DNA from: Ruditapes philippinarum | Lineage: Eukaryota | Assembly (NCBI RefSeq): GCF_026571515.1 | Contig: NW_026856417.1 | Location: 1-64,000 of the forward strand | Direction of reading: 5' to 3' | Length of the DNA stretch: 64,000 nucleotides | Program-made: the position numbers and the translations under genes | Notes under the pieces: model-generated | Databases searched by the model: none | What the model saw: only the letters and a program-made list of their open reading frames with translations | What the model was told of the DNA's origin: nothing | Shown here: one piece after another, positions 20,398 to 63,544 of the stretch | How the letters are laid out: each line of letters opens with the position of its first letter | Numbering within the stretch: position 1 is the stretch's first letter

Positions 20398-23261
20398 ATG
20401 GGATTATACAAATACAAATATTTTGCTGCTTTATATGTTTTGATAGTTACTATTGCATGTTATATTACAAGAAGCAACGGATCAAAATTTAAGTATAACA
20501 TTTCAAGTTGGAAATTTTGTTTAAAATCCGACCATATTTTGTCGACGCTGACACAAGTAACGCTATCGCAGTGTGTTGATGAATGTGCCACACGAACAGA
20601 CTGTCAGGCGGTTAACTATTTCAAGAGTTACCACATCTGTGAACTTATTCCGGAAAACAATGGTGTGTTGTTTGAAACTACAAAGGTCAATCGTGGATGC
20701 GTTTTGGTAAAAAAGGATGATATGATCACAACCGAGGTAATGTTTTTTAGATAAAAACGATTGTAGAATTTAAATACATATTTCTTTTGAGAAAATCAAC
20801 CCAAGATTATAAAAAAGATCATTGAAGTAACAAAATTATAATGACGTCTAGGATTTTCATTATTATATTAAAGATGCATCGGTATAAATGCAAATGTGAA
20901 TGTTTAAAGTGTGTTTTAAATCGAATGTTTGTTCATTTAATAGTGATTTGCAAAAGGTAAATATGACATTAAGACAATACAGTTTTTTATCTGAATAAAA
21001 CTAAAGTAGAAACAGAAAAAAACAACAACACGATGACCAACAACAACATCAACAACATCATGCAATTACTGTTGGAATGAATACTGCTACCACTATTACT
21101 AATACTGCCGCGGCTGCTACATCTACTACTACTACTTCTACTACTACTGTTAGTGCTGCTACTGCTTGTGCTGCTACTGCTACTTTTATTACTAATGCTA
21201 CTACAACTACTGCTTTTACTACTGCTATAAAGGCTGCTACTACTACAGCTACTGCTGTTTCTGTTGTTGTTGTTGCTACTTCTGCTCATACTACTAATGC
21301 TACTGATGCCTCTGTTGTTGTTGCTGCTACTTTTGCTGCTATTACGATTGCTTTTGCTACTATGTCTGCTACTACTTCTGCTTCTTCTACTACTACTGCT
21401 TTTACTACTGTTGTTGCTGTTGTTGCTACTACTGCTGCTAATGCTTATACTGTTACTGCTGCTAATGCGTCTGCTTCTACTACTGCTGCTGCTACTAATA
21501 CTACTTCTTTTGCTACTTCTTTTGCTACAACTACTGCTGCTTTGACTATTACATGTAATGCCGCGGGTTTATATCTTTAACTTAAGTCTGAAACAGTCAA
21601 ACACTTGCTCGATAACCAATACTGATTGATGAATTTCCTTACAATTAGATTAATGAAAGCTGTCCTTGTGGCGCGAGGGAGTCATGTGACCTTGAATTAG
21701 ATGTGTCTTGCACGATTAAAGGTAAATATTATGTCTCCAGTGATAATAAATACAATATGAACTATTCAATTTAGAATTGCTCTCAACAGATAATGATCAA
21801 ATTCTTTACACTGTAAATGAACAGGTATTTGGAAAAAAGCTTTCCCGCAATTATCTGTATTAAATAATTAAATAACAATATAATCATTCAGATCACACGT
21901 TAATATATTTTTTAAAATAATGTGTTCATATGAATAGGCTTCATTAACAAAGCTTTCCTTTTTCATAGAATGCGAAACTTTAACGATACAAAATGGTCGA
22001 GTAAATGGAAATATGCGGTCAATAGGATCTTCAATAACATACGAATGCAACCAAATGTACATTGCAACATTTCAAGAATCAGGAGCGACCTGCCTTGCAA
22101 ATGGGACATGGTCATACACTCCCGATTGTACAAAAGGTTTTCCTTTTTGCTATATATAGGAACATTTTATGTTTTACTGAGTGGAATGGAAAAGAAAAAT
22201 AAGTTAGCAAACAAAAAATCTCCTGGTAAAAGTTTGGCTGAAATGAAATTGAGATCAAAAGTAAAACAACTTTTCTTGAGTAAGGTTTTTGTACCGTTCC
22301 TTTCAGTGTATGTCTTTCTTTTTCTTTAAACCTATTAGAATAATAAAAGAAATGCATCAATATTAATAAGCATGACATTGTATATGTTATTGAATACGCC
22401 AATGGTTTGTTCGATATTACGGTCGCCACCATAATAGTACATGTTGTTTCACTATTTTAGTCAAAGAAAACCAGAAGAGAAATTTTCGAACTCTTTTTTG
22501 TCTCAATTTATTGCACATCATATACAAGTATATTACACATTGATATTGCACACATTCCTAGTGTATATTGGTCAATAAACCACTATATTTTAGATACTGA
22601 AGGTAATAACATTTGCAAGGGTTGTATACGTCCGAGAGATTGTCAAGATGTTAAAGCAGTTAACAAAACAGCAGAAACAGGGTTGTTTAAGATTTATCCA
22701 ATTGGAAGCAATGGGTTTATGGTTCGCTGTGATATGGACACGCAACCTGGCGGCTGGACGGTGTTTCAACGCAGAGAATCAAATAGTGATTTTGAAAAAG
22801 ACTGGGAAGCATATAAGGAAGGGTTTGGGCAGTTGGCTAATAATTTCTGGTTAGGGAACGATAAGATATGGAAACTTACAAGCAGAGGGCTGTACAAACT
22901 ACGAGTTGATCTCATAGACCAAAATGGCTCGGAGGGATATGCGGAATACAGTTCTTTTTCAATCGGAAATGAGTCGACGAAATATGTCTTGAATATCGCT
23001 GGCCAAAGTGGAACAGCCGATGACAGCTTGATCGTGGGTCATAACGGAATGATGTTCAGCACTATTGACCGAGACAACGATACATATTTTAGATCTTGTG
23101 TATATCTTTTTAAGGGAGGGTGGTGGTACTCTGACTGTCAGGTTTCAAACTTAAACGGACCATATGGGAACGTCCGTTGTAATCGCGGAATGACGTGGAA
23201 ACAATGGAGAGGTAATTGCGTGTTTATGAAATTTACTGAAATGAAAATTCGTCGAAAGTAA
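20398..23261 (+). CDS. FReD paralogue A: signal peptide-PAN/apple-4Cys-CCP/sushi-fibrinogen C domain protein (415 aa)
   Basis: Exons 20398-20736, 21649-21721, 21969-22136 and 22594-23261 (1248 nt, GT-AG). PAN motif QCVDECATRTDCQAVNY...CEL. CCP motif C...NG...G..ITYEC...TCLANGTWS..PDC. Fibrinogen motifs CDMDT..GGWTVFQRR, W..YKEGFG, FWLGN, GGWWY..C..SNLNG and EMKIR. Confidence 0.95.
21020..21545. repeat. Degenerate trinucleotide microsatellite (ACT/GCT/GTT)n in intron 1 of paralogue A
   Basis: Low-complexity NCT repeats that generate the spurious poly-Thr/Ala, poly-Leu and poly-Ser ORFs. Confidence 0.95.
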
Positions 23262-23454
23262 CTACAATGTTTTGAGAACAGAGATAAAGCATGCTGTTTA
23301 TTTGATAACTTTTTATTGCAGCAAAATCGCTTTAATTTCAATGAAAGAAATTAATATTTTGCGTTAGTGTCAAATATTTCACCGTAAGATGCACATAAAC
23401 ATTATAACATCATCTTATGTATATAACAATTGTTCTTTATATTATTCTGAAAAG

Positions 23455-24790
23455 TGAAATCCTTTAAAATCATTATTTTATTTTTTATAACTACCGCACT
23501 TAAATCATAATTTCCGTTTTGATAAATGATAGCGCTTTAACTTCATTATTTAAATTGTAATAAATGATATCGCTCTTAGATCATTATTTCGATTCTGTTA
23601 AATAATAGCGCTCTAAAGCATTTTCTAACACTATCGGAATTTTTTCTATATAAACAAAGAAGGCCCGAATCGTGCATTATTCTACAACAATGCACTCGCC
23701 GTTCTTATCATCTCCCTGTGCATTTTCACATTGAGGGCGCCATTTTGTTTGAAAAATCTGATAAACAAAGAAAAATTTGTTGCGAAAACTATTTAGAATG
23801 AAAGAAAATGGTCTTACTATGAAAATGAATCCGAACATCAATATCTTTAATTCAGTCGTTAACGCTGCACAGACGTTTAAACTGTTGTTTACGTGACGTC
23901 ACAATGTAGCGCCAAACAGCACGTGCAAAACAATCAAATCAAGTACGCTATTTCAATATCGCAAACGAGTTAAGTTTTACATTTATTTCACTTTTAATAA
24001 TTTGTATTTCGCTTGAAAAATTATAGAGTGAAATAAAATAAACAAAGTTTTACTAACGTTTTCAAAATTCGTTATTCTCAAAATGTTTCTAAATACGGTA
24101 GATTTAACGACAGTTTTTTCAACCCACTGGAACAGCCTTTAAAGAACGTTTCTATTGGAAATTCTGAGGCGAAAACAAGTTTAATCACCAAACATAATGT
24201 ACAACTTTATAATAATAATTATAATTTATATCTTTTCTTGACGTGTTGGAATGAAAATAGATATTAATTCTTCGTGCATTATTGTATAATAATACACGTT
24301 TTTCGTTCAAATGCTTTGTAATTAATCACTCAGGCCTATCGGCCTTCCTGATTATATTACTACGCATTTGAACTCAAACCGTGCATTATTCTACAACAAT
24401 GCACTAAGAATTTATATCTATTTCCTTAATTTACGTTTGGAAAAAATCATAGCGCTGTATGTTTTTTTTTCTGATAACGCCCTGAACTCTTATTTTTCCG
24501 ATAAATTACAGCGCTTTTAAAGCATCATTTCAATTCTCATAAATGATGTCGCTCTTAAAATCATTATGTCGATTTTGTTAAATAATAGCACTCTAAAATC
24601 ATTATTTTCATTCTGATAAATGATAGCGCTTTAAAATCATTGTATAAGTTCTGTTAAATAGTAGCGCTCCAAATTTATAATTTCCATTCTGATTAATATA
24701 GCACTCAAAAATCATTATTTCCATCCTGATAAATAATAGAACTCTAAATTTTTTATTTCCTTTCTAAAAAAATGATAATGATCAAAGAGC
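23455..24790. repeat. ~39-bp minisatellite (TTCTGATAAATGATAGCGCTCTAAAATCATTATT) interrupted by nested element fragments at ~23625-24430
   Basis: The unit is present at 23460-23620 and again at 24440-24780. Confidence 0.8.
24255..24423. mobile_element. Long imperfect palindrome, probable transposon terminus
   Basis: AAATAGATAT..ATTCTT.GTGCATT.TTGTA.AATAAT.CACG...TTCAAATGC is mirrored about the centre AGGCCTATCGGCCT. Confidence 0.7.
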
Positions 24791-25389: not shown

Positions 25390-27590
25390 ATGGCAGTGTC
25401 GGTTAACCTTGAATAAATGGAATACGATCTCTTATTACAGAGATTGGGTCGCACAAACTTATAGTCATATTACATGCTTTCTTAGCACCAATTTATGTTG
25501 CGTATCAATGACCAAAGGAGTCAATGTAAAGTACAATATTTCGAGCTTTAAAAACTACTGTTTACAGCAGGACCGTTTTTTACGACGCTGACACAAGTAT
25601 CGCAATAGCATTATGTGGATGAACGTGCAACAGGAACACACTGTCAGGCTATTAACTATTTCAATCTTTATCACGCCTGTGAACTTATTCCGGACAATGA
25701 TGGTGCGCTGTTTGAAAGACTCCATCATGTATCTTCGTTCATGAAGCTGACATGGACCTAAGTAATGTACTTTAATGAGCATAAATATCTCAAAAATATG
25801 ATGAGTTCATGAAGGTAATTTAAAGCTGAAATATCGTTTTAAACGTACAAAATATGTTTAATATGGTACACTTGATGAATTGAAATTTTATGATTTGATT
25901 TAAACGCCTGTTTTTTTTTCTAGTATGAATTATACGAATCGTTTGTAATAACCAATTTGATCAAGATCTATTTCTAAGTGATGTTATATTACCAAAAGGT
26001 TAATGACAAATGTTCTTGTAACCCTAGGGAGTCATGTGATATCGAAACTGATGTCTCATGTGCGATAAAAAGGTAAATACTATTTTCATATCTTGTTCTT
26101 CTGTTGTGATGTTTTGGGGTTTTTAAAATAACTGTTTTTTTTGCAGACGGGAAAGAAGTACACAAACTAATTACCCTTTCTATAATATTATTGTACGTAT
26201 ATTGAAAAAGTTACATTACTCTACATTTTTTGTATATTTTCGTAAATAGTCTTGTCCCATGTCAATTCACGAGAACATAAAGCTTTACAATAACACATTG
26301 GATACATAATTAAATGTGATTAACCGCTCGTTTGTTCTTGCTGGAAAGAGTGTGAAAGTTTTAGGATTCAAAATGGTCAAGTAAAAGGAAATGTGCAGTC
26401 CATAGGAACTTCAATGACATACGAGGGCAACCAAATGTTTATTGCAACATTTCAAGAATCAATCGCGACTAATCTTGCAAATGCCGAATGGTCATACGCT
26501 CCAGATTGTAAGAAAATGTTTACGTATCATTGCACTAGTATCTTTTATATATGTTGCAACATATCTCTTAGAAGAAAATTTAACAAAAATTCAAACATGC
26601 TTCAGTTTTTGGCCTAAATGATTAAAAACCGATTTTTCTTCGAACAATGGCCACATAGTACTTGTTTTTTTAGGATTATGTCACTTACATTCTTATATAT
26701 GAATAATTTACTAAATAATAATTATCAACATTCTAATATTTGATGTTTTTCTTCTTATTACATTGTACCTAATGTATAACAGGGATTAAGGGCAAAAAGT
26801 ATGTCAATTGCTTTTTGTTGAACTGTTTCCGTCCTTTCATCAATTTGTCTTTTGCGATTGCATAAAATCTATATTAGCAGTTTACGTTTTAAAACATACT
26901 TTACACAAGTCAAAGTCACTTTTACTTGAATCTTTCAAATTTTCTGTATTTAAGATACTAATGGGCATAACATTTGCAAGGGTTGTTTACTTGCGAGAGA
27001 TTGTCAAGATGTTCAAGCAGTTAACATGACAGCAGAAACAGGAGTGTTTGAGATTTAACCAACAGGAAGCAATGGCTTCATGGCTCGTTGTGACATGGAC
27101 ACGACAGCTGGCGGTTGGACGGTGTTTCAAAACATATAATTACATAGTGATTTTCTAAAGACCTGGGAAGTATAAGGAAAGGTTTGGTCAATTGAATGAC
27201 ACGTTTTGGTTAGGGAACGATAAGATATGGAAAGTTACACACAGTGAGCAGTAAAAGCTACGAGATTATCTCAAAGATCAACAGGGTATGCCAAAAACGA
27301 TTTATTTTAAATAGGAGCTGATACGACGAAATGTATTTATAATATCGCTGGGCATAGCGGAACACGGATAGTTTGATTGAGAGACACAACGGAATGAATT
27401 TCATTAATCATCACCATGATACTTCTATTAAGTATGATTGTGCAGAATATTATAAATGAGGCTGGTGGTATTGCGACTGTCAGTCACCGAATATAAATGG
27501 GTCATATGGAGATTATCGGTTGAAATTACGAAATGACTTGGAAAGATTGGAGAAATCCATGCGTGTTTATTAGACTTACGAACCATAATT
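25390..27590 (+). pseudogene. FReD paralogue B (pseudogene, same 4-exon layout)
   Basis: Frameshifted PAN exon ~25390-25762, 4-Cys exon ~25999-26072, CCP exon ~26349-26515 with lost Cys, and fibrinogen exon from 26955. In-frame TAA at 27056-27058 (Tyr codon in paralogues) plus further stops and indels. Confidence 0.92.
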
Positions 27591-28460: not shown

Positions 28461-28559
28461 AAGGGAAAATGAGGATCCCTGGTTTGAGTACAAGTCAGGT
28501 TGCACCTTTTCTCTCCCTAAATGACAATTGCAATGATTGTGATGTCATCCTGCTGCTGT

Positions 28560-31460: not shown

Positions 31461-34400
31461 ATGGGCTACTACAAAACGATCAAAACTATTTCTGTATTGT
31501 GTTTTTCGTTTGTAACTATTACATTAAGCATTTTCACAAATGACGAACTAAAAGTTAAGTTCAGAATTTCGAGTATGAAATTTTGTTTAAAATCTGACGA
31601 TATTTTGACGACGTTGACACAGGTTTCGCTATCGCAGTGTGTAGATGAATGTGCAACAAGAACAGATTGTAAGGCTATTAACTATTTCAACCGACTTCAC
31701 ACATGTGAGCTTATCCCGGACGATGATGAGGAGCTATTTGAAAATGCCAGGAGAAATCGTGCATGTGTTTTCGTAAAAAAGACTGACATGGATGTAAGCG
31801 AGGTATGGATGTAAAGAAAATCGCACTTGTGGAATGTTCAGAATTGATTTCATTTTAATAATCAATAGATGTCTTTTTCTACTTCTATTAAATTAAATGC
31901 ATATTTATAAAATGACAGATAACATATTTAAAAACACAAATTATTTTGTTTATTTTGATATATTTATATTTTCATACAAATATCTAATATTTCTCAGAGG
32001 CGTGAGGCGTGGGGGAAGATGCACTTTTTCATTATCTATTACATACAGACTCTATCAAACCGAATTTTCACGAACTTTGATGTGATTAATGCTTCCTAGG
32101 GATCACTCTATAGCCATATTTTTATTCCGAAACGCCTTAGTCAAATATTTTTTGTTGTAAATGTTGGCCTACAAAGTTGTGTAGTACAATGCATGTCATT
32201 CATTTCATATAATTTCTTTCACTAGATAAATGACAAGTGTGCCTGTGACGCTGCGGAGACTTGTAATGTTGAACCCGATGCTTCATGTGCCATTAAAGGT
32301 AAATATTGATTCTTGATTTCTTGATTTATGGAGGATATGTTTCCAAATCAACGGTATTTGTATATTTTATTTGACAACACCACCAACGCAATGACAGGAA
32401 ATTTGGTCATTCATTACTGCCAAAAACTTTAACAGTGCTTTTATGAAAGTATTGTGTCTGGAAAATCGTTTTTCAAATACCCAACCCATCCATCATAATA
32501 CTAAACATAAATATACTAGCCTTCCACTTACGGGTTTTGAATTTGTGCGTTTAGCAATCCTTGATTTACTAGTCTTCAACGTTTACCGGGTGGCCACGCT
32601 AAATCTATATTCATGATTGTGTTAGATCGCACAGGTAAAATAATGACAACATTTTTCATCTTAAAATTAATATGGGAAAATACAGAAATTTGACCATATC
32701 TTACTTCTTTTTTGTAATTTCAAAATAAAATCTTATGAAACAGTGTCTCGCAATTTAACTACCATTGTTTAAATGAATCCATTTAGCTACATGTTAGGTG
32801 TATGTGTTTGCTTGTTTGGTTCTTTTTACGGCGAATCAACACAGTAAAGGTCATATAACGCCGGAACAGGAAAGATGATTTTGGCTAACCTCGTGTGTTA
32901 CAAACTTCAACACCAAGGGTCAAAACCACCTCAGCTGCTGAAGCTGTAGAAGTATAGACTCCAATTATTCAAACCCATTTTGTCGCCTCTTACGATCACA
33001 TAGGGATAAACTTAAGTTGCAATTCTTATGCCTCGAACATCGACGGCAACCCCTCAACCACAAAGGGAAAAGTGGTATGAAAAACACATTTAGAGTTACC
33101 TTTAGATTCTATATATTGTATATAGGTCATCAGGAATAGATAAATCATAAAAAAATCACAATAAAATTGTTGTACATGTAAAACAAGATCATGAACATAC
33201 AAAACAACGCTGGACATTAATTCAATTAATGTCTTTTAAACATTTCAACCAATAATAAATTGTTAATAATTTAAACAATATATTTCTACAAAGACGTTTA
33301 AGTCGGAATATACTCGTAAACAACAAATCTCGAAAGCAGTTATCATGTTTGAATCAACGAGCACATGCAAATGAATAATGTATGTAGATCTTATCAAAAT
33401 ATTATTGATTTAGTTTAAAAGGAACGCTAACTAAAAGCCTGCGTATTATTATCTCGTATTTTGAAACCATTCACTCTTTCTTGTTCATTTTTTAAAGTAC
33501 AATCCACAATGTATATGCCAATATGGAAATAAGTTTGATTCAAAATAAATTCAAACTATTAAATGAATTTAATAGTACATATTGCTTTCATATGTATACC
33601 TGACACTAAGTTAATGTTTCAGAAACCTTTTACGAGATAAAAAAGGGATACCGGTGGGTTTTGTAAACGTTTAACTTAATACGGTCTTTGTCAAATCTGG
33701 ATTAAAGGCTTAAAAATTTGCAAATGTCTCTTGTCGCTATCATATTCATCTTTCAAATTATAACCATTGTTCATATATATACTTTGACACTGTTATAAGT
33801 TAATGGCAAAACATGGCCATCGGGCATGCATATCTAAATCGAAGATAGCATACAATATATACAGTCGAACTCGCTTATAACGAATTATCGTTAATAACAA
33901 ACTAATTCTGAATTCCCCGGCCGATTCCTACTTTATTTTATATTAAATTCAATCACATTGCTTAGTTCGTTCTCTATTAAAACGAATTTTCGGCTATAGC
34001 GAATCATTTTTTCACGTCAAACCGGCGAAAAATACGTAAAATTCGTCGGTTAAAACAATCTGTTATAATTGAAATATGATGGTGCAACGATTAATTTTGA
34101 AATTGCTTATGGTTTAAATTCTATTGTATCATAGTTTGGAGACCTTTCTGTTGAAAATGTGTCAGGGTTAAATCGTATACATATACATGCACAGTGCGTT
34201 AACTGGAGTGCGGGTATTAGTTACCCGCACTCCAGAGCATGCCCATTGATTGGCTAATTTTTGCTGGGGTTTACATACTGTGACGACAGAGAAAGGGAAA
34301 GCGACAGAAATGTCATATTCAGATGTTCGTTCATTAGTTCATTTTTGCCGGGGTTTCATATTGTGACAACAGGGAACGTGCTTTTATGTTTGACTATGAT

Positions 34401-36251
34401 ACAAAAGAGAAAGAACACCAAACCACTCGGCAATCTGATTAATACTCGGGGGCTACGCCCCCTCGTACAAATCAGATAGCCTCGTGTTTCGGTGCTCTTT
34501 CTATTACTAAGCTTTTGGACGTTTGATGATTGAACGAATTGGAGTGTTCTATATATGATAAACTGAATGTGAAAGTTTCATTTATATATATGTTTTAAGA
34601 AAATAAACTTATTAGCTCATTAACTTATTATACGATCTTATTAGCATGGGAATACAATACATGTCCATAAACATGTACCTGTGTATATAAGTAAATGCAT
34701 GTATAAGAAAGAAAGTACTTACGATGATAGTATATTTGTATATTTTCGTCAGAGTTTAATTGTATGAAATAATTTATATATATAAATAAATAGAAATATG
34801 ACAAAAATAACTATAATGCAAGATTCCTAAATAATAAAAGATCATAATAAATATAAAAGTTTAATGGTAATAACTGTTGTCACTTTAGCAAATTAACTAT
34901 TAAGGTCAAATTTATAAACGTATTCTTGTATATTATTTATTATTAGTGAGTTGTTTTTTTTTCGTTTATATGGACTTAAAATTTTCTTTCAACAGAGTGT
35001 AAGAGTTTAAGAATACGTAATGGCAGAGTAAATAGAAATATGCGGTCCATAGGAGCCTCTGTAACATTCGGATGCAACCAAATGTACATTGCAACATTTC
35101 AGGCAACAGGAGCGACTTGTCTGGCAAACGGAACATGGTCTCACAAACTAGATTGTGAAGAAGGTTTAGTTTTATGTACTATATGTTTGAAATAACTACC
35201 TATACATATGAATGTGTTAGACGGCCGTAAAAAATTCAGAAAGAATTTAGATAAAACTGCTTGATAATTTGATAAGCGTCTGCAGCGACATTCATACAGA
35301 GGCATAAACTTCACTTCAACACGTCAATCAATGTTTCTTTTCTTTTTCATAATTTGTGAAAAATGTTTTCACAAACAAGTAAAAATGTGCCTTCATGTAT
35401 AATTACCTTACCTTTAAACATTTTTGCATATCATTGAAGATCCTCTATTTCGTAGATATAATGCAGTTTGTTTGTTTTGTTGTTTTGTTAAACAAGCACA
35501 TTTTTCACAGTGTGTCATTGTTGTTAAAACTTAGCATATTACAATATTCACACGTTCACAATTGATAAATGTCATATTGTTTTCAGATGCTGATGATAAT
35601 AGAACTTGTTGTACATTTCTTCCGGGAGATTGTCAGGATATACAAACTATAAACAAGGCAGCAGAAACTGGGGTGTTTAAAATTTATCCAACGGGAAGCG
35701 ATGGCTTCATGGTTCGTTGTGACATGGACACGCCACCTGGCGGGTGGACTGTGTTTCAGCACAGAGAATCAAATAGCGATTTCCTACAAAACTGGGAGGC
35801 ATATAAGGAAGGGTTTGGTCAGTTGGCTAATAATTTTTGGTTAGGGAATGATAAGATATCGAAACTTACAAGCAGTGGTCAGTACAAACTACGAGTTGAT
35901 CTCATAGATCAGGAAGGCTTAGAGGGATATGCGGAATACAGTTCATTTTCAATCGGAAATGAGGCGACAAAATATGTCTTGAATATCGCGGGGCATAATG
36001 GAACAGCATCGGACAGTTTAGTTGAGAAACATGACGGAATGATGTTCAGCACATTTGACCAAGACAACGACAAAGTAACTGGTAATTGTGCGAAAAGATT
36101 TGAAGGAGGTTGGTGGTATCGTGGCTGTCAGACATCGAATTTAAACGGACCATATGGGGATGGCGATTGTAATCACGGAATGACGTGGAAAAAATGGAGA
36201 CATCAATGTGTCTTTATGAAATTTACTGAAATGAAAATACGTCGGAAGTAG
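31461..36251 (+). CDS. FReD paralogue C: signal peptide-PAN-4Cys-CCP-fibrinogen C domain protein (415 aa)
   Basis: Exons 31461-31802, 32226-32298, 34996-35163 and 35587-36251 (1248 nt, GT-AG, same intron phases 0/1/1 as paralogue A). Confidence 0.95.
32800..32870 (-). mobile_element. SINE/LINE-type 3' tail fragment in intron 2 of paralogue C
   Basis: The reverse complement GGCGTTATATGACCTTTACTGTGTTGATTCGCCGTAAAAAGAACCAAACAAGCAAAC resembles the tail of the SINE at 38149-38429. Confidence 0.6.
33862..34070 (+). mobile_element. 5' fragment of a Tc1/pogo-like MITE
   Basis: TA followed by CAGTCGAACTCGCTTATAACGAA, with internal repeats of the TATAACGAA-like motif. No partner TIR found. Absent from the paralogous intron of D. 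Confidence 0.55.
34408..34502. mobile_element. ~95-bp hairpin (probable transposon terminus)
   Basis: AGAAAGAACACC...ATCTGATT...GGGGGC TAC GCCCCC...AATCAGAT...GGTGCTCTTTCT. Confidence 0.75.
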
Positions 36252-40419: not shown

Positions 40420-43400
40420 ATGGGATTCTACAAAACGATCAAAACTTTTTCTGTATTATGTGTTTCGTTTGTTACTATTACATTAACCTTTTTCGATAGT
40501 GAAGGACTAAAAGTTAAGTTCAAAATTTCGAGTATGAAATTTTGTTTAAAATCTGACGATATTTTGACGACGTTGATACAAGTATCGCTATCGCAGTGTG
40601 TGGATGAATGTGCAACAAGAACAGATTGTAAGGCTGTTAACTATTTCAACCGACTTCACACATGTGAACTTATCCCGGACGATGATGAGGAGCTATTTGA
40701 AAATGCCAGGAAAAATCATGCATGTGTTTTCGTTAAAAAGACTGACATGGATGTAATCGAAGTATGACCTTTTAAAAAATCGCTCGCTCTTATGGAATGT
40801 TGTGGTGCTTTCAAATAAATAAATGATAGATTTTTCTTTTTACACTTGAATCTATTGAATCAAATGCATAATTATCAAAATGACAGATAACAGATTTATT
40901 TACATAAATTAATTTGTTAATTTCAATATATTTTTCATTTTTAACAAATATCTCATATAGCTGATTTGGTTTTTATGTTTGAATAAACTAATTAATGATA
41001 ACTGATTTAAAAAATATATAAAATATTAAAATAGTATGCTTAAATAATACTTAAACATACATTTACGTCTGTTGTGACCGTTTACTTAAAAAACAGCAGC
41101 AAAACTGACGGCACAACAAAAAAGACAATAAAATAATATTCTGACAAAGATGATGGATAATGGTATAATTATACATCTAGGTATATAAGCCAGTGCTTGG
41201 GGCGTATGGGGTGTATCACATTTTCATTATCCCATACATACAGACTCAATCAAATATTGTCTGCAATTTTCATGTAATGTGTAATTTTGTTGTGATTAAT
41301 GCTTCTAAGGGATCACTTTTTCGCAAGATTTTTATTCCGAAACGCTTAAGTCAAAGTTTTAATGTAAATGTCTGCCCACCAATTTGTTCAGCACGTCCAT
41401 ACGCCATTCATTTCAGATAATTCATGTAATTATGTGTGTTAAATAGTGGTAAAGGTTTATCAAGATTTATTGTTGAGTGATAATTTCTTACTTCTAGATA
41501 AATGACAAGTGTACCTGTGACACTGCAGAGACTTGTAATGTTGAGCCCGATGCTTCATGTACAATTAAAGGTAAATTTTGATTTCTTAACTTAGGATGGA
41601 TGTGGTTCCAAACCAACGGTATGTGTACATTTTATTAAACAACACCAACACAATACAGGTAATGTTACCATTCGTTACTGCTCAAACGTTTTATAGTACT
41701 TTCATGAAACTATTGTATCGAAAAAGACTTCTTCTTTCTAGTATAATTTAGATAAATGGAATGTGCAGATACATAAACAGATTGTTATTTGTTTCCAACT
41801 CAAGGGATGGATTTTTATAATATTTTTTACGATTATTGTTAGAGTGTTTTTTGTGCAATTGTGTAGGAAAACCTATACACATATAGCTAGCCAGTGCTGC
41901 GTTTCTTTCCCATGGGATTGCCCCCGACGGGATTTAAGCTCCCGCGTTCAGCAATCTTTGGATTACTAGTTAGACAAGCTTGGATACTGATATTTATGCT
42001 TGCGTTTGATCGCATAGGTAGACTGTAAAATATGATAATCTTTCAATGAAAGTATAGTTATTTAACCGTTTCTTATTTGTTTTGTATAATGTCAAATATC
42101 TAGTTGGGATTCTGAAAAAAAATTTTTTTTAAATGTTGTCTCGCAATTTAACTACCATTACTTCATAAGAGTATTGATATAGTTCAATTAAGCTACCACC
42201 TAGTGGTATGTGTTTGTTAGGTGTGTCTATGGCTGCAATCATTATGCCTCAAACTTGACGGCAACCCCTCAGCCACAAGGGAATAGTGGTATGTGTTTGT
42301 TAGGTGTGTCTATGGCTGCAATTCTTATGCCTCAAACTTGACGGCAACCCCTAAGCCACAAGGGAATAGTGGTATGTGTTTGTTATGTGTGTCTATGGCT
42401 GCAATTATTATGCCTCAAACTTGGCGGCAACCCTTCAGTCACAAAGGGAATAGTGGTATGTGTTAGATTTTATGATAAATTATTTATCTTTTCAATGAGG
42501 GAATAATTTATTTCTTCATCAAACTATGTATATTATATATAATAACATTATAATATTCACATTAATAATATTTGTCATATGTTGCGGTTTGGATCGGAAT
42601 ATCCGTCCCGAGGGATTGCCTTGTTACCATCTATGGGCGGGTTCACCAGGGATGGATATTTTGATCCGAACCGCAAACATATATCAGATATTTCTTTTTG
42701 AATATTCTACCATATTCTATTATATTTTAAATTCTTTACTGTAACATGTTATTACATCCGTAACTATTCTCTTACAACAGCATATAAAATTACAGATTCA
42801 TTCATAACGGTATATTTACGTCTTCCTAAGCAAGCCATTGTGTATCACGCGACTCATCCCTCCATATCTCATGGGTAGAACTAACGGAAACGCCAGTCTG
42901 ATATGCAAGAATGCACGCACCGTGTTTTGTAGCACGTCATTACCAATAGATAAGTCAGAAAGTAATTTATTATTAATAATAAATTCATTTCAATAACGCG
43001 TTTCCATATTCGCATAAACATTGTTGTTCAATTATTGTTCATGTAAAGCGAGAAAATGAACATACAGAAAACGCTAAATATTTTATGCAGTCAATGTCCA
43101 TTTGATATCTCATTTATTATAAATTGTTTATAATTCAAACAATATGTTCAAACAAAATATTAACGTCGGAATAAACTCGGAAACAACACATCTCGAAAGC
43201 AGTTTTCATGTTTTGAATCAACGAACACAAGCAAATGAATAATGCATGTTAATATCAAAATTTTATTGATTTAGTTGGGAAGGAAATATGGAAACGCATT
43301 GTTTAAGTAAGTATAATTCAAAATAAATTCAAATTATTTAATAAATTTAATGGAAAATTTTTCTTTTATCTGTATATCTGAATTTCTAGTAAAGTTACAG

Positions 43401-45560
43401 TTTCAGAAACCTTTTAAGAGATGAAAAAGGATGGGATAAGTAAACGTTTAACTTAATATGATCTTTGTCAAATATGAATCAAGCGCTTAACAGTTTGCAA
43501 ACATAGAAAATGTCCTTTTTTGCCATCATTTTCATTTTTCTATATTCAAATTAGAACCTTAGTTTTTGTTCATAAACATAATTTGACAATGTTGTTTGCT
43601 AAAGGCAAAACAGGGAAAGTAGGCATGAATATAATTATCATTTTTAAAATCATCTAGACCAAATATAACATTCAGGCGAAATAATCTTAAATAAAGTTTA
43701 AATAATGCTAAAATGAACAAAATAAAAAAAGAAAAAGAAATGACTTACAGTTTCATTGATTTTTGAGAGTGCTCATGGTAAAAACTGCTCTAGTTTATGG
43801 AAGCTTGATGTTTTTAGATATGACAATCATGAAAATGCTTGTCCTTCTATTTATATATTTCAAGGAAAAGAATCTTAAGATTCTACAAGCAGAGGATACA
43901 ACACATGTCCATGAACATGTACCCATGTATATTAGTATACACATGTATAAGAAAGAAAACAATTTACGATGAGAGTATATTTGTATATTTTCGCCAGAGT
44001 CCAAATAATTATATGAAATGATTTATAATAGAAATTGAACAAAAATATACATACATTTTTCCCAAATAATAAATGAACATAATAAAATAAACAAATTTAA
44101 TCATCTTGATAACTATTATCACATTATTAATTTTACAATTTAGGTCAAACCTATACATGTATATCATTTAAGTGATTATTTTCTAAATGGACTCAAATTT
44201 TTCTTTCAACAGAGTGTAAGAGTTTTACCCTACGAAACGGCAGAGTAAATGGAAATATGCGGTGCATAGGAGCTTCTGTAACATTCGAATGCAGCCAAAT
44301 GTACATTCCAACTTTTCAGGCTCTAGGAGCGACTTGTCTTGCGAACGGAACATGGTCTCACAAACTCGATTGTGAAGCAGGTTTTTATGTTTGTGTATAT
44401 ATATGTTTAAATGATTGATTATAATAAAATCGATACAAGTACGATAAAATCTCCGAGTGTAGCTTATATTTTTTAAAACATTTATAAGCGGTTCCGGGTC
44501 AGCATCGTCATTCATACACAAGCATAAACTCATCCCACTTCAAAAATATACTCATCTGCTATATGCATGAACTATCTTTTGCATCTTATCCCTGTTTGCA
44601 ATTGGTATAATCTTAGTTAATAAGTATTTAGCATGGACATCTAAGTACTACTTTGTTACCTTTATGCCATAAAACTGCATGTTCAGTACTTCTTTTTATT
44701 TTGAAAAACATCTTATTATTTAAACATTATTTAACCCATGTTTGATATTTCTAAAGAATTAAAAGAAATATGCATTTCTGAGGCATAATATATAATACTA
44801 CATATAGTACAATTAAATCATTTTTCGTATATCATAGTAAATAGCATAACATATTTACACGTTTACAATTAATTTTCATTTGCAATCTTCAGATGCTGAT
44901 GATAATAGCATTTGCGACGGTTGTATACTCCCGAGAGATTGTCAAGACATAAAAACTATAAACGAGACAGCGGAAACAGGGGTGTTTGAGATTTATCCAA
45001 CAGGAAGCGATGGTTTAATCGTTCGCTGTGACATGGACACGCTACCTGGCGGCTGGACAGTGTTTCAACGAAGAGAATCAAATAGCGATTTCCAAAAGGA
45101 CTGGAAAACATATAAGGAAGGGTTTGGACAATTGAATGACAATTTCTGGTTAGGGAATGATAAAATATGGAAACTTACACACAGTGGTCAGTACAAACTA
45201 CGAGTTGATCTCATAGATCAAAATGGCTCAGAGGGATATGCGGAATACAGTTCATTTTCAATCGGAAATGAGTCGACAAAATATGTCTTGAATATCGCGG
45301 GGCATAGTGGAACTGCTACAGACAGTTTAGTTGGGAGGCATAACGGAATGATGTTCAGTACTATCGACCAAGACAACGACATCTATCCCCGTAATTGTGC
45401 GGGTCGTTTTAAAGGGGGTTGGTGGTATTGCAACTGCCAGTCTTCGAACTTAAACGGACCATATGGAGACGTCGTGAATAATCGTGGAATGACGTGGAAA
45501 GATTGGAGACAACCAAATGTCTTCATGAAATTTACTGAAATGAAAATTCGTCGGAAGTAG
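40420..45560 (+). CDS. FReD paralogue D: signal peptide-PAN-4Cys-CCP-fibrinogen C domain protein (416 aa)
   Basis: Exons 40420-40761, 41498-41570, 44213-44380 and 44893-45560 (1251 nt, GT-AG). Introns and flanks align with paralogue C. Confidence 0.95.
42200..42462. repeat. ~83-bp tandem triplication in intron 2 of paralogue D
   Basis: TAGTGGTATGTGTTTGTTAGGTGTGTCTATGGCTGCAAT..TTATGCCTCAAACTTGACGGCAACCCC occurs three times. A single related copy lies in C near 33015-33080. Confidence 0.9.
42575..42690. mobile_element. Hairpin (probable transposon terminus) in intron 2 of D
   Basis: ATATGTTGCGGTTTGGATC..AATATCC.TCCC ... GGGATGGATATT..GATCCGAACCGCAAACATAT. Confidence 0.7.
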
Positions 45561-45570
45561 GATGGACATT

Positions 45571-48176
45571 TTTAGCTCGACTTTTTTTTTTGAAAAAAAA
45601 ATAGAGGTATTGCTACAGTCAGGTCGGCGTTGCCGTTGCCGTTGCCGTTGCCGTCCGAAAACTTGTACCTGGATCATAACTTTTTTATTTTCTTTGTGTA
45701 TTGTCTTCATACTTGGCCACAACAACCCTTGGGACAAGACCTTTCAGTAGACCACACTAACCTTGACCTTCATCCATAAATGACCTTGACCTTCAAGGTT
45801 AAAAGTCCAATTTTTGCTTGTTCATGCTGTTATTGGCTGTAACTTTGTTATTTTTGAATGGATTGTCTTCAAACTTGAACATAATAATCTTTAAGGATAT
45901 CCCTTAAAAATAACCAGCCAGACCTTGACCTTCACTCATAAATGACCTTGACTTTGAAGGTCAAATTATTGAAATTTTCATTTTTTTGGCTTTTATTGGC
46001 TGTAAGTTTGTTATTTTTGAATGGATTGTCCTGAAACTTGAACATAATAATCTTCAAAGATTACTGTTAAAGATATACCGGAAGACCTTGACCTTCACAC
46101 ATTAATGACATTGTCTTTGAAGGTCAAATTATTGAAATTTTCATTGTTTTGGCGGTCACTGACTGTAACTTTGCTATTATTGAAAGGATCAACTTCATAT
46201 TATTAGAGAACATTCTTAAGGACCAGACCTTGTTTTTTATCAAACCCAACTTTGCTTGGGCTCTTAAATGACCTTGACCTTGAAGGTTAAATTACTGAAT
46301 TTTCTCAGATTTGTGCAGTAAATGACCATATTTAAATATTTATTGGTGTGTGTGTGTCTATATATATATATTTACAACAACAACAACAATAACTAAAATT
46401 GTGTCATTGTTTCTATTTATAGAATTGCGTCATTGTTTCTATTTATAGAATTGCGTCATTGTTTCTATTTAGAGAAATTGGGTCATTGTTTTTTTGGGGT
46501 TTTTTTATAGAAATGCGTCATTGTTTCTATTTTTAGAGATTGCAACATTTTTTCTATTTTTAGAAATTGCATCATAATTTCTATTTTTAGAAATTGCATC
46601 ATTTTTTTTCTATTTTTAGATATTGCGTCATAATTTCTATTTTTAGTATTTTTAGAGATTGCATCATTTTTTCTATTTTTAGAAATTGTGTCATAATTTC
46701 TATTTTTAGAAATTGCGTCATAATTTCTATTTTTAGAAATTGCGTCATTGGTGCTATTTTTAGATATTGCGTCATTTTTTCTATTTTTTAGAAATTGCGT
46801 CATAATTTCTATTTTTAGTATTTTTAGAGATTGCATCATTTTTTCTATTTTTTAGAAATTGCGTCATAATTTCTATTTTTAGAAATTGCATCATTGGTGC
46901 TATTTCAGAAACTGTGTCATAATTTCTATTTTTATAAATTGCGTCGTAAATTTCTATTTTTAGAAATTGCGTCATTGGTGCTATTTTTAGATATTGCGTC
47001 ATTTTTTCTATTTTTAGAAATTGCGTCATAATTTCTATTTTTAGTATTTTTAGAGATTGCATCATTTTTGCTATTTTTAGAAATTGCGTCATAATTTCTG
47101 TTTTTAGAAATTGCATCATTGGTGCTATTTTTAGAATTTGCGTCATTGTTGCTATTTTTAGAAAATGCGTCATTGTTTCTAATTTTAGAGATTGTGTCAT
47201 TTTTTCTATTTTTAGAAATTGTGTCATAATTTCTATTTATAGAAATTGCGTCATTGTTTCTATTTTTAGAAATTGCGTCATTTTTTTTCTTTTTAGAAAT
47301 TGCGTCATTTTTTTCTATTTTTAGAAATTGCGTCATAATTTCTATTTTTAGAAATTGCGTCATTGGTGCTATTTTTAGAAATTGCGTCATTTTTTCTATT
47401 TTTAGAAATTGCGTCATAATTTCTATTTTTAGAAATTGCGTCATTTTTTCTATTTTTAGAAAATTGCGTCATTTTTTCTATTTTTAGAAATTGCGTCATA
47501 ATTTCTATTTTTAGAAATTGCGTCATTTTTTCTATTTTTAGAAATTGCGTCATTGTTGCTATTTTTAGAAATTGCGTCATTTTTTAGAAATTGCGTCATA
47601 ATTTCTATTTTTAGAAATTGCGTCATAATTTCTATTTTAGAAATTGCGTCATTGGTGCTATTTTTAGAAATTGCGTCATTTTTTCTACTTTTAGAAATTG
47701 CGTCATAATTTCTATTTTTAGATATTGCGTCATAATTTCTATTTTAGTATATCTAGAAATTGCGTCATTTTTTTCTTTTTTTAGAAATTGCTTCATTTTT
47801 TCTATTTTTAGAAATTGCGTCAATTTTTCTATTTTTAGAAATTGCATCATTGTTGCTATTTTTAGAAATTGCATCACTTTTTTATTTTTAGAAATTATGT
47901 CATTTTTTGTATTTTTAGAAATTGCGTCATTTTTTCTATATTGAGAAATTGCGTCATGTTGCTATTTTAAGAAATTGCGTACTGTTGCTATTTTTAGAAA
48001 TATGCTTAATGTTTCTATTCATATATATACAAAATATATAAAGAAAACTAATGTGACAAGACAGACAAATTAAATTTATAAAAAGGAAACGTTAATATAT
48101 GTTCAAACCTTTCTATGTTTGCGTTTAGAAAAAGTAAAAAGTCGAGCGTTGCCCCCGCCCGGCGGTGGCTCTTGTT
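45571..48176 (+). mobile_element. Helentron/HINE element inserted ~10 bp after the stop codon of paralogue D
   Basis: Starts TTTAGCTCGACTTTTT and ends AAAAGTCGAGCG...CCGCCCGGCGGTGGCTCTTGTT (subterminal inverted repeat plus 3' hairpin). Contains a (GCCGTT)n microsatellite and TGACCTTGACCT core repeats. The empty site is visible in paralogue C (GGACATTTTTAACTGTCAAGCATTGTGTG). Confidence 0.88.
46395..48015. repeat. ~27-29-bp minisatellite (TTTTTAGAAATTGCGTCATAATTTCTA) expanded inside the HINE
   Basis: More than 50 tandem units with a variable central hexamer. Confidence 0.97.
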
Positions 48177-49436: not shown

Positions 49437-49595
49437 NNNNNNNNNNNNNNNNNNNNNNNNNNNNNNNNNNNNNNNNNNNNNNNNNNNNNNNNNNNNNNNN
49501 NNNNNNNNNNNNNNNNNNNNNNNNNNNNNNNNNNNNNNNNNNNNNNNNNNNNNNNNNNNNNNNNNNNNNNNNNNNNNNNNNNNNNNNNNNNNNNN
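49437..49595. other. Assembly gap (159 N)
   Basis: Run of N. Confidence 1.
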
Positions 49596-50621: not shown

Positions 50622-52093
50622 TAAATTTGGCTATGACAGTGTCGGTGCAATTAAACATTTGCACTCAATCACCGGAAAAAAATTGCGATTCCACTTGAAA
50701 ACTGTCGGGCCGCAATTTATATTCTGCTGTTAAAAAGTGGCACATATCTATATATCTCAGAATGCTGGAAAAAACAGTTTTGAGATACACTATGGCCAAC
50801 TTTGATATTAAAAGATATTTATAATTGCTTCACAGTCTCTTTGTAAATATAAAATAAACATGTTTTGATTTCACACAAAGTAGATTTATTATGTCTAAAA
50901 TTCTACACACCATAGGTGGTCACAATATGAATATATAGTGTCATTAAAAAAAACTGGCAGTTTTTTTTAAGGAAAGACCAATTGTCCTTGTCACATAATA
51001 AGAAATGCAGCTGCCCATACATACTATATTCATTCTTTTATTCAAATAAGACATATTCAGTAAGAATTTCATAGATTTCAATGAATCTCTGTGAGTCAAA
51101 TGTTTTACTTAATGATGGGCATAGTATATCTTTTATAATGTTTTAAGTGTCGTGCAGTTATCTTATGAAAACGAATTACTATTTACTCTAATTCTTCATA
51201 ATTTGTAAACTCACTGTAACATTTTCATCTGCGCTTTATCATTTTTAGGGCGGTGAAAAACGGATTACACATGTACAAAAACTGTATCCAAAATAGTGTA
51301 ACTCCTACTCACTGTTTGGTTCACCAAAATCTTCATCGGTTTAAAAGCTATTTTTAGTTTCAGGTAAAACATAAGATAGTGACACTTTCGTATGAGGACG
51401 TCATTCTCAGAAAATTTTATTGAACATTGATATTTGCCCATTCATGTATTGTCATTTGAGACAATGAAATAATCTTGATTTGTAGTGCCGTAAAAAATAT
51501 ACATAAACTCTTGTTTGGCCAATTCTTTTAGAGGTATCCGAAAACTGAAAGAAAGAGATAATTGTTTGGGATATAACGACAGTATCCGACATTAACGGAT
51601 GTTTAATATTCCACTATGGTCCATAATCCTTAATAGAAAACTTGAAGTCTGGTATTTGAGGCAGTTTGTTTTTGTCGGCAGTTCTGGTGACGTTTGAGCG
51701 AAGTTGCACAGAAATTTGTTAACGGTCCGTCGAAATATATATAAGGAAATGAATATTTGAAGTTTTGTATATAATAAGCGAAACTTCATCTTACAATGAT
51801 TCCCTTATCATTATCTTTTGATACATTTCAAAGACTTTTATAAGATTTAAATATCAAAAAGTCATGTGTTACCTCTCTTTATTAAACCGGAATAGATAAG
51901 CTTAGGGTCAACACTAAACAAGTCAAAAGAGGACATTCACGCGCTAAAAAAGGAGGAAAAAGGAATTCCTAAAGAAAAGCTCGAAATGAAAATATTGCAA
52001 ACTCGTTTTTATTTAAAGTGTTGAACAATTACACTTGTACACGTGCGCACACTCGCAGTTATACAATATTTTCGAAGCTTGTTTAAAAAAGTA

Positions 52094-55000
52094 TTACTCT
52101 GTCCGGCGTATTTTCATTTCAGTAAATCTCATAAAGACACATTCATTCCTCCAATCTTTCCAAGTCATTCCGCGATTACAAGCAACGTTCCCATATGGTC
52201 CGTTTAAATTAGATGACTGACAGTCGCAATACCACCAACCTCCTTTATAATATTCTGCACAATCGTGATGATTAGAAGTATCATGATGTCGGTCAAAAGT
52301 GCTGAACACCATTCCGTTATGTCTCTCAACCAAACTGTCTGTGGCTGTTCCGCTATGCCCAGCGATATTCAAAATATATTTCGCCGACTCATTTCCAATA
52401 GAAAATGAACTGTATTCTGCATATCCCTCCGAGCCATTTTGATCTATAAGATCAACTCGTAGTTTGTACTGACCTCTGCTTGTAAGTTTCCATATTTTAT
52501 CGTTCCCTAACCAAAAATTGTTATCTAACTTTCCAAACCCTTCCTTATATGCTTCCCAGTTCTTGAAGAAACTGCTATTTGATTGTCTTCGTTGAATAAC
52601 CGTCCAGCCACCAGGTGGCGTGTCCATGTCACAGCGAACGCTAAAACCATCGCTTCCTGTTGGATAAATCTCAAACAGCCCTGTCTCTGCTGTCTTGTTT
52701 ATAGTTTGTATGTCTCGACAATCTCTCGGGCGTATGCAACCTGTGCAGGTGCGTTTTCCTTTAGTATCTAAAAAAGCAACACAAAGAAAATCATGTTGTT
52801 GTGCCTTTGAATGAGTGCAAAGCTTGATGCAATATTGTTACAACTGTTAGACAACGATTCAAGCGACCTTAATTGATATAGTGATTAAGCTGACATTATG
52901 AAAAAGGGGCTTAAAATAAATAGAGTAAAAGACAATGATCTAAAATCAAGACATTTTCCTTTCTTTATTCAAATTGAAAAGTTGTTGGAAGTAATACTTT
53001 AATATAAACATCAACGTCCTGTGATTATGATTTATAGCAGTAAATGTTTGTAAAACCAAACGCTAAACAAGGTTTTATCATTTTGGTCCGAGTGGTTAAA
53101 GTCGTTTACTTTAAAACACTTGCATATCACCGCTGTAGGTTTGAGCCGCGTCAGCGTGTCCGGATTCTTTCATTTGAGAAAGCTATCCAGCTATCTTAAG
53201 GAACTTCGGTGCTTCTATCGGGGTGCCCGTTTGTGCCTGAAAAAATTCAGAGAGGGGCACCTGAGGTCGTCCTCCATCAGTACAGGTGGTAAGTCGCCAT
53301 ATGACCTATAATGCGTTGGTGCGACTATAAACCCAACAAAAATATCTAGGTTCACGCAGTAGAGTGACTTTGTGGCTTGCGCGCACTTCTGTTGAATGCT
53401 CTCATAAAAACATGTATACGTGAAAAATTAAAGTGAAAACCTTTTATACAATCGGGTGTGTATGACCATGTCCCATTTGCAAGACAAGTCGCCCCTGGTG
53501 CTTGAAATGTTGCAATGTACATTTGGTTGCATTCGTATGTTATTGAAGCCCCTATTGACCGCATATTTCCATTTACTATGCCATTTTCTATTGTTAATCT
53601 TTCGCATTCTGTCACATAAGAAAGAGAGTTCAATCATATACAAGTTAAAAATACTTGAAGCATATACATCTGCGTACGAAATAGACATTAATCGTCTAAT
53701 ATGATCATCTTAATATAAGCATATACCTAAGTTTTCACTTTATCATAAGACATCTACATTTTTTCTATTATGTTATAAATTAAATAGTCCATTGTTTTTA
53801 TTTGCTTGAAGAATAGTATTTCTTTAATTTTATTTTCTTTTCTTCATATTCTAAACCTTTCCGATATACATTTGTATTTGTCAACACACATAATTGATTT
53901 GGAAATTGTTTATAATGATAACAAACGTCTTAGAATTCGATTACGAAAGTAATTACAAAAAGGTGTTAAGTGAGTTACAATCTAGAAATAAATATGCTTT
54001 CTAAAACCAGGAATCATGAACTCAAAACATACAGAAATGTTAGTTGCATCTTCACCCGAAATATATTTAGCGGGAACTTTTTCAGTTTAATTGAATTTAT
54101 GCTCCGCCTTCCAATATAAGAAAAAGAAGAAAAAAACACAAGCGAACATTATATTTACCTTTAATCACACATGATAAATTGGGTTCAAAACCGCATGACT
54201 CCCCAGGGTTACAAGAACAGTTTTCGTTAACCTACCGGGATAGGAAAAACACTTAATAATGGATTTTGAATAACTTGTATATTAAAAATGATGTTGTACA
54301 CGTTTAGATCCGGAGGGTCAGGGTCAAATGAAACATTTAATTTTTCAAGAATTTTAAAACGTATTAGTTCAGAAACATTATTCGAGAAGCCTCAAAAATG
54401 TATTTATTTATTCCTCTTATGCTTATACGCAGGTCATCGGATTTGTTAATCAAGGATTCTTTGGTTTTATCATCGGCCGTAGCAAAAATTGTCCGAGACA
54501 ATTTATCTCTAAAATTTTACTCAGAAATTTATGTTTGATTAGTTGTTTAGTAGATACGGTTGACCGACGTCAAGTTGGTGTTGAAGTCGGTGTTTAATGG
54601 GCTAAACAAACACATTTCACGGTAATAGTGTCTGAAAATCAATTTTTTGTGTTCAAAATATTACTTTCAATTAACTAATTTATAATAACTATAATCTAGA
54701 AACACAATGTAAAGATATTTTCCAACATTCCTGATAAAGGTTTTTGTACATTATTAAGTTGAAATAAACATCCTGAAGATATAAAGTAATTGTATACGAT
54801 TTATTATTTACATATTTATATAATAATGAAATAATAGAAAAAGTACATAAAAATATTAAAAAAAACAATTTTCTTGAAATCCATACCTTGCTTACACCCA
54901 TGTCAGCTTTTTTAACGAAGATACACCCACGAGTTTTCTTTGCACTCTGAAGCAAGACACCATTATCATCCGAGATAAGTTCACATGTGTGAAGTCGGTT

Positions 55001-55219
55001 GAAATAGTTAACCGCCTGACAATTTGTTCTTGTTGCACATTCATCCACACACTGCGATAGCGATACTTGTATCAACGTCGTCAAAATATCGTCAGATTTT
55101 AAACAAAATGTCATACTCGAAATGCTGTACTTTACGTTGAATTCTTCGCTTCGTGAAAAACAGCATTTGATTGCTGCTAGACAAACAAACAATACAAAAC
55201 TATGGTTGTTTATTGCCAT
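52094..55219 (-). CDS. FReD paralogue E: signal peptide-PAN-4Cys-CCP-fibrinogen C domain protein (415 aa)
   Basis: Exons 55219-54887, 54231-54159, 53608-53441 and 52767-52094 (1248 nt, GT-AG, same phases as A, C and D). Confidence 0.95.
53083..53343 (+). mobile_element. Second, more diverged copy of the tRNA-derived SINE (intron 3 of E)
   Basis: TGGTCCGAGTGGTTAA...GAAGCTATCCAGCTA...GGTGCCCGTTTGTGCCTGAAA...GGGGCACCTGAGGTC...ATATGACCTATA matches 38149-38429. Confidence 0.9.
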
Positions 55220-60491: not shown

Positions 60492-60545
60492 TTAAACATA
60501 TTTATTTTAGCTCGATTGCGAAACAAGTTCTTACAACTTATATTA

Positions 60546-63540: not shown

Positions 63541-63544
63541 AAAA

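Follow-up and report, generated by a model that had tools for sequence, protein, structure and literature searches.

In the Manila clam, Ruditapes philippinarum, the initial 64 kb of contig C4904 (542,709 bp), referred to below as the window, contain five paralogous genes in which a PAN/apple domain, a short four-cysteine (4-Cys) segment, a Sushi (CCP) module, and a fibrinogen C-terminal domain follow one another behind a signal peptide. The locus raises the question of what kind of protein such mosaic genes encode, and whether they represent an undescribed pattern-recognition system, as the initial annotation had suggested. With fair confidence, we assign the cluster to a tandem-evolving subfamily of the mollusc FReD proteins that has the order signal-PAN/apple-(4-Cys linker)-(Sushi)n-fibrinogen and whose members would act as secreted, fibrinogen-headed agglutinins or opsonins.

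Five PAN exons and five fibrinogen exons were detected by tblastn with the exon peptides; all ten fall between positions 20398 and 55219, and the remainder of the window gave no match. The paralogues (g1 to g5) have a common four-exon plan, which consists of a signal-and-PAN exon of 333-342 nt, a 4-Cys exon of 73 nt, a Sushi exon of 168 nt, and a fibrinogen exon of 665-674 nt, and the AG/GT borders of the 73-nt and 168-nt exons were located in each copy. The first exon ends in phase 0, and the 73-nt exon shifts the frame to phase 1; a Sushi exon of phase 1-1 follows, and the whole fibrinogen domain is encoded by one intronless exon with a phase-1 start. The joined models of g1 (20398-23261, plus strand), g3 (31461-36251, plus strand), g4 (40420-45560, plus strand), and g5 (55219-52094, minus strand) comprise 1248, 1248, 1251, and 1248 nt and encode 415, 415, 416, and 415 aa, respectively. 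Each intact model has a single terminal stop, all 12 introns are of the GT-AG type, and the pairwise protein identity among the four products is 68-81%. Both the shared exon plan of five paralogues and the presence of four intact copies of 415-416 aa, as initially annotated, were confirmed in every detail. Database searches for g3, g4, and g5 were made per exon, and the full-length g1 product was searched via an identical database record (P0001); lengths, the alignment, and ratios of nonsynonymous to synonymous substitution (dN/dS) were obtained from the joined models. The positions of the exons are given in Table 1.

Table 1. Positions, in window coordinates, of the exons of the PAN-Sushi-fibrinogen genes and of associated features.
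Feature	Position	Strand	Remark
g1 exon 1: start codon, signal peptide, PAN_1 (113 aa)	20398..20736	+	identical to RefSeq XP_060591580.1 (P0001)
g1 exon 2: 73-nt 4-Cys	21649..21721	+	
g1 exon 3: 168-nt phase 1-1 Sushi/CCP	21969..22136	+	
g1 exon 4: fibrinogen C-terminal domain, stop codon	22594..23261	+	
g2 pseudogene	25496..27580 (about)	+	
g3 exon 1: signal peptide and PAN	31461..31802	+	
g3 exon 2: 4-Cys	32226..32298	+	
g3 exon 3: Sushi	34996..35163	+	
g3 exon 4: fibrinogen domain	35587..36251	+	only residues 154-415 are included in RefSeq model P0002
g4 exon 1: signal peptide and PAN	40420..40761	+	
g4 exon 2: 4-Cys	41498..41570	+	
g4 exon 3: Sushi, one extra Cys	44213..44380	+	
g4 exon 4: fibrinogen domain	44893..45560	+	
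Assembly gap (N run), g4-g5 intergenic spacer	49437..49595		no exon affected
g5 exon 4: fibrinogen domain, Ca-site motif D-R-H-H-D	52094..52767	-	
g5 exon 3: Sushi	53441..53608	-	
g5 exon 2: 4-Cys	54159..54231	-	
g5 exon 1: signal peptide and PAN	54887..55219	-	

Three of the four segments match Pfam families above the curated cut-offs: PAN_1 with 31-33 bits (cut-off, 21.4), Sushi with 26-37 bits (cut-off, 20.7), and Fibrinogen_C (PF00147) with 208-219 bits (cut-off, 22), the last over profile positions 2-219 of 221. The 24-aa 4-Cys exon matched no Pfam family, and its motif, C-x-C-x5-C-x7-C, is conserved across the copies. In the Sushi module of approximately 55-60 aa, the hallmark residues Cys139, Cys164, Cys179, Trp185, and Cys191 are invariant. 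The Pfam scan of the exons gave no match to a collagen or Ig family. A weak match between the sialic-acid-binding micronemal repeat and the PAN exon of g1 (E 0.01) fell short of the Pfam cut-off and was dismissed as evidence.

The g1 model is identical, letter for letter, to RefSeq XP_060591580.1 ("fibrinogen-like protein A"), for which PF00147, PF00024, and PF00084 are precomputed; i.e., the RefSeq gene model agrees with ours in placing PAN_1 and the fibrinogen domain in one predicted polypeptide. The RefSeq model of g3 ("ryncolin-4-like") agrees with ours at the Sushi-fibrinogen junction. Two proteins from short contigs, P0270 (285 aa) and P0173 (163 aa), were considered as cDNA evidence and rejected; their sequences run through intron DNA, and they are thus genomic open reading frames and not transcripts. 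A hydrophobic core is present within the first 30 residues of the products (12-aa Kyte-Doolittle values of 2.2-2.6), and no membrane-like hydrophobic stretch was found by hydropathy after the N-terminus of g1, g3, g4, and g5, a profile that fits secretion. The tandem family of secreted mosaic proteins proposed earlier is accordingly real with respect to its domains, and its secretion is a prediction.

The nearest solved structures to the fibrinogen head are those of FIBCD1, M-ficolin, tenascin-R/C, L-ficolin, and tachylectin-5A (TL5A) (E 1e-46 to 4e-52), and MFAP4 and the angiopoietins are also among its best structural relatives. Both canonical disulfide pairs, Cys210/Cys239 in the A-domain and Cys362/Cys375 in the P-domain, are invariant, and the calcium loop (D-x-D-N-D) reads D-R/Q-D-N-D in g1, g3, and g4. 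In the conservation of these features and in having a C-terminal fibrinogen recognition head on a protein predicted to be secreted, the clam products resemble the ficolins and TL5A, to whose solved structures the E values are 1e-46 to 1e-50. The ficolins, however, have a collagen-like Gly-X-Y stalk, whereas the N-terminal half of the clam proteins is composed of PAN, 4-Cys, and Sushi segments and is far larger than the N-terminus of TL5A. The gastropod FREPs sensu stricto are likewise fibrinogen-headed mosaics encoded by mollusc multigene families, but they contain IgSF domains and a coiled-coil interceding region, neither of which is found in the clam proteins; somatic diversification is likewise not in evidence for the clam genes.

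In the reading that we favor, each product would be a secreted, soluble protein in which the C-terminal fibrinogen head, with a calcium site retained in three of the four copies, serves as the ligand-binding module. The stalk made of PAN, Cys-rich, and Sushi segments would take the place of the collagen of ficolins or of the coiled coil or IgSF domains of snail FREPs, and may mediate oligomerization and/or attachment to a second partner such as a cell surface, the matrix, or another humoral factor. The molecule could in this way cross-link or tag its targets as an agglutinin or opsonin.

Several observations weigh against this assignment. The S1 pocket of acetyl-binding fibrinogen lectins is characterized by one His and two Tyr, the roles of which we take to be those in the structures of FIBCD1, TL5A, and the ficolins. 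In the alignment with FIBCD1 (4m7f), all four copies have Gln in place of the His that follows the second P-domain Cys, Cys (g1, g3, and g5) or Asn (g4) in place of the pocket Tyr, and Val in place of the last Tyr; none of the copies retains this set of residues. Because the acetyl-pocket His and Tyr of ficolins and TL5A are replaced, ficolin-type lectin activity is not assured. One loop is three residues shorter than that in FIBCD1 in g1, g3, g4, and g5. In addition, the calcium loop of g5 reads D-R-H-H-D, with His at two of the Asp/Asn positions, and the AlphaFold2 model of P0001, calculated from a 13-row alignment, has a mean predicted local distance difference test score of 49, which is too poor for a fold search. 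Oligomerization is purely conjectural, and an immune role would be extended to these proteins only by analogy with other FReD proteins. A full-length public gene model exists for g1 only, as the g3 model begins at residue 154, and no full-length public protein for g4 or g5 was present in the search results.

The altered pocket has a further peculiarity. Two extra cysteines, Cys389 and Cys402 (g1 numbering; window 23040-23261 and equivalents), occupy canonical acetyl-pocket positions in g1, g3, and g5, and neither is found in g4. The fact that both are present or absent together suggests a Cys389-Cys402 disulfide across the former acetyl pocket. The mature g5 protein has an odd number of Cys residues.

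The distribution of public gene models would also be expected if g1 were the sole working gene and most of the copies were unexpressed or decaying relics, the integrity of g3-g5 being transient. The cluster does contain one decayed copy: g2 is a pseudogene, in which the PAN remnant (approximately 25496-25769) has frameshifts and a TAG, the second (4-Cys) exon has 74 nt (25999-26072), the Sushi remnant (26349-26515) has lost two of its four Cys, and the fibrinogen remnant (26957-27580) contains seven stops. The reading frames of the other four copies, however, remain open, their GT-AG sites are intact, and no structural Cys has been lost; dS between the copies is 0.3-0.7 (Nei-Gojobori), an interval over which neutral decay would have left stops as it did in g2. 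At this dS, the dN/dS values for PAN, 4-Cys, Sushi, and the two parts of the fibrinogen domain lie between 0.15 and 0.47, or about 0.3 for each domain, and indicate coding constraint on all four exons in all four intact copies. We therefore consider it highly improbable that g3-g5 are relics.

The constraint is not uniform within the fibrinogen head, in which dN is roughly twice as high in the P-subdomain (0.17-0.24) as in the A/B part (0.09-0.13). Since the acetyl-pocket residues are replaced and the P-subdomain is the part most divergent between paralogues, the copies probably bind different ligands, and not simply N-acetyl sugars. Synonymous divergence is also uneven. Between g3 and g4, dS is 0.13-0.24 in the first two exons (31461-32298 versus 40420-41570) but 0.38-0.66 in the fibrinogen exon, and the PAN exon DNA of g4 is 85% identical to that of g5 (40498-40766 versus 54882-55150) and 76% identical to that of g1, a pattern that partial gene conversion or mosaic duplication could account for. 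We infer that the family gains and loses copies by tandem duplication, pseudogenization, and partial gene conversion, and that phase 1-1 Sushi exons are added or dropped as well. The birth-and-death evolution put forward in the initial annotation fits the single pseudogene, the dS values, and the species-specific clades of Ruditapes and Mercenaria described below.

Some of these features would also suit a non-immune extracellular role in the matrix, adhesion, mucus, food-particle capture, or shell matrix, for which the PAN and Sushi segments would act as adhesion modules and the head as a matrix or receptor ligand like tenascins, angiopoietin-like proteins, and MFAP4. The presence of tenascin-R/C, MFAP4, and angiopoietins among the best structural relatives of the head, the loss of the canonical acetyl-binding residues, and a dN/dS of about 0.3, without the gross positive selection often claimed for immune receptors, all point in this direction. 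On the other hand, tandem expansion with pseudogenes, divergence focused on the binding subdomain, and species-specific clades are usual for invertebrate recognition lectins, and most characterized bivalve FReD proteins bind microbes according to one report (PMC11741071). A non-immune role thus appears possible but rather unlikely.

A different function would be that of a complement-like initiator, after the "complement-like" reading of the initial annotation. By analogy, the PAN-Sushi stalk would dock a serine protease or a C3-like thioester protein, and ligand binding by the head would start a proteolytic cascade. Sushi modules and apple domains are docking modules of vertebrate complement and contact-system proteins, and the lectin pathway is initiated by the fibrinogen heads of ficolins; relatives of the clam genes with up to five Sushi modules would also be in keeping with such docking. 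The clam proteins lack, however, the collagen stalk through which ficolins bind MASPs. Complement regulators and components have tandem CCPs or a CCP combined with protease, vWA, or thioester domains, together with a demonstrated activity toward C3/C4, whereas the clam proteins have one CCP each by the Pfam scan, which detected neither a protease nor a vWA or thioester domain. A cascade-initiating function is quite improbable, and a fibrinogen-headed agglutinin or opsonin remains the reading that we prefer.

The architecture had been thought to be lineage-specific, a claim that fails in view of its colinear occurrence in Mercenaria mercenaria and several Mytilus species. A search scored on the N-terminal 195 residues returned venerid clams only. 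Three M. mercenaria proteins (386, 468, and 469 aa) contain PAN_1, Sushi, and Fibrinogen_C, two of the three having two Sushi modules; the Mercenaria records P0006, P0121, and P0122 are named [quoted passage not shown] and show 55-61% identity to the clam proteins. An exhaustive representative search added a Mytilus californianus protein of 417 aa that is colinear over residues 43-414 (35% identity), with Sushi just over and PAN_1 just under the Pfam cut-off, and its N-terminal half as the query retrieved ten more proteins from several Mytilus species. The N-terminal halves of the clam and mussel proteins are colinear over approximately 150 residues at 22-26% identity (E 2e-12 to 1e-6), and the Cys residues of PAN, the linker, and Sushi are invariant in 13 aligned sequences.

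The order PAN, Cys-rich linker, Sushi, fibrinogen is shared by the Mercenaria proteins and by a Mytilus family of about 10 genes (11 proteins) annotated as "techylectin-5B-like / angiopoietin-related" (e.g., XP_052080667.1, P0215; 35% identity for P0215), at lengths of about 385-470 aa. In Mytilus, however, the acetyl-pocket His and Tyr are kept and the P-domain loop is longer than in the clam, and PAN and Sushi are so divergent that the precomputed Pfam annotation mostly misses them. The ESM Atlas contains a mollusc cluster of 53 members with Fibrinogen_C in 100%, Sushi in 57%, and PAN_1 in 40%, and a mollusc PAN-and-Sushi cluster of 87 members that lacks the fibrinogen domain.

Further copies were found in the Ruditapes genome. 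The region C11096:82883-107146 is colinear with the window at 13.9-39 kb, with 80-91% nucleotide identity, and holds the upstream neighbor gene, an intact counterpart of g1 (XP_060559348.1), the g2 pseudogene, and a counterpart of g3; this stretch is either a divergent haplotype or a segmental duplicate. At C11229:228055-239620 (minus strand) lies a divergent PAN-(Sushi)5-fibrinogen gene in which the second P-domain Cys is still followed by the pocket His. A decayed remnant of PAN and 4-Cys occurs upstream of the latter gene, at about 243000-243900. A sixth cluster member, g6, is located just past the right end of the window (C4904:67870-64771, minus strand) and consists of signal-PAN, the same 4-Cys exon as in the other members, and a run of three Sushi exons. 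The 9 kb downstream of g6 (window 55300-64000) yielded no fibrinogen exon, which shows that the PAN-4Cys-Sushi cassette occurs also without the lectin head. Across the genome, candidate fibrinogen exons number at least 518 and signal-and-PAN first exons about 90. Only three contigs (C4904, C11096, and C11229) have matches from both the PAN and the fibrinogen searches, so that most PAN leader exons must join other C-terminal modules.

In the fibrinogen-domain tree, the Ruditapes and Mercenaria copies form one clade (100/100) with species-specific subclades, which indicates expansion or homogenization after the split of the two genera. The Mytilus family forms a separate clade (100/98), and the C11229 gene stands apart, among heterodont proteins that have a fibrinogen domain only; for the "other" clam exons in this tree, the N-termini were inferred only from the lack of a PAN match on the same contig. 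A single clade for all PAN-Sushi-fibrinogen genes was rejected (p-AU 0.005, the group having been defined after the tree was seen). Together with the varying number of Sushi modules, this rejection indicates that the N-terminal cassette and the fibrinogen exon joined or parted more than once, in keeping with the shuffling of phase-1 modules as exons. The idea of an exon-shuffled origin gains support in the same way, since relatives carrying 1, 2, 3, or 5 Sushi modules back a modular evolution of the phase 1-1 Sushi exon.

A broader proposal can be framed from these loci. The PAN-(4-Cys)-(Sushi)n cassette might be a bivalve-wide alternative to the collagen stalk, which would oligomerize the heads and dock a protease or a thioester protein. 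Genes with 1, 2, and 5 Sushi modules and neighbors of the g6 type, which lack the fibrinogen head, would then provide target recognition for a hitherto undescribed lectin-complement pathway of molluscs, each paralogue having non-acetyl ligands of its own. We give this proposal little credence, and the more limited assignment to secreted agglutinins or opsonins is the one retained here.

The novelty of the family is partial. RefSeq already models g1 with all three domains, and the combination of PAN and fibrinogen domains has been published, so that "undescribed" does not hold for the architecture as a whole. Two reports (PMC7588048, PMC11741071) list proteins with PAN/Apple and fibrinogen domains for Crassostrea gigas, Lottia gigantea, and Biomphalaria glabrata, and the PAN/Apple domain was assigned to B. 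glabrata FREP1, four C. gigas genes, and some Lottia FReDs by Lu et al. 2020 (PMC7588048). As far as these texts describe them, the mollusc PAN/Apple-FReD proteins resemble the clam genes in being secreted and in having an N-terminal PAN_1/apple and a C-terminal fibrinogen domain; they are known from genome surveys only, and their function is stated to be unclear. BgFREP1 differs, by the same descriptions, in having an IgSF domain between PAN/apple and fibrinogen. For the oyster, limpet, and Biomphalaria PAN-FReDs, which are compared here by those descriptions only, the accessible text of the citing reports mentions neither a Sushi nor a 4-Cys exon. Lineus ruber FreD-C1, from a nemertean and thus also spiralian, has a Sushi/CCP module N-terminal to the fibrinogen domain, but no PAN domain is reported for it; this likeness is drawn by description only (PMC9835746). 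What stands of the original claim is the Sushi-bearing form: no description of the PAN-Sushi-fibrinogen combination, or of any function for it, was found in the searchable literature, the primary oyster and limpet papers lying outside that reach.

The assembly of the cluster is interrupted at one place. The gap at 49437-49595 lies within the 6.5-kb tail-to-tail spacer between the stop of g4 (45560) and that of g5 (52094), and a (TAGG)n microsatellite adjoins its left side. The distance to the closest family exon is 2.5 kb, and no reading frame therefore spans the gap. Because g1-g4 are on the plus strand and g5 is on the minus strand, with the flip occurring across the gap, both the placement of g5 next to g4 and its inverted orientation depend on a scaffold join that is unverified. 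The same spacer contains a 27-bp minisatellite of about 58 copies (window 46396-48001), and the long minus-strand open reading frames at 46781-47444 are products of this minisatellite and not genes. Similarly, a 167-aa Thr/Ala-rich open reading frame in intron 1 of g1 (window 21077-21580) represents low-complexity repeat DNA and not a gene; the repeat matches C11096 at several offsets.

The general picture of mollusc immunity is unchanged by these findings; the architecture is present in public annotation and its PAN-fibrinogen core in the literature. What is added to the PAN-containing mollusc FReDs is the Sushi module, the 4-Cys linker, and the remodeled pocket. Bivalves have hundreds of fibrinogen-domain genes, and those with accessory domains are almost all unstudied; the clam itself is commercially important and suffers from disease caused by Vibrio and Perkinsus. 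Comprising four intact copies and one pseudogene, and having relatives of differing Sushi number as well as a remodeled pocket, the cluster is a compact test case that may be used to examine what PAN and Sushi modules contribute to a fibrinogen lectin head and how its ligand specificity diversifies.

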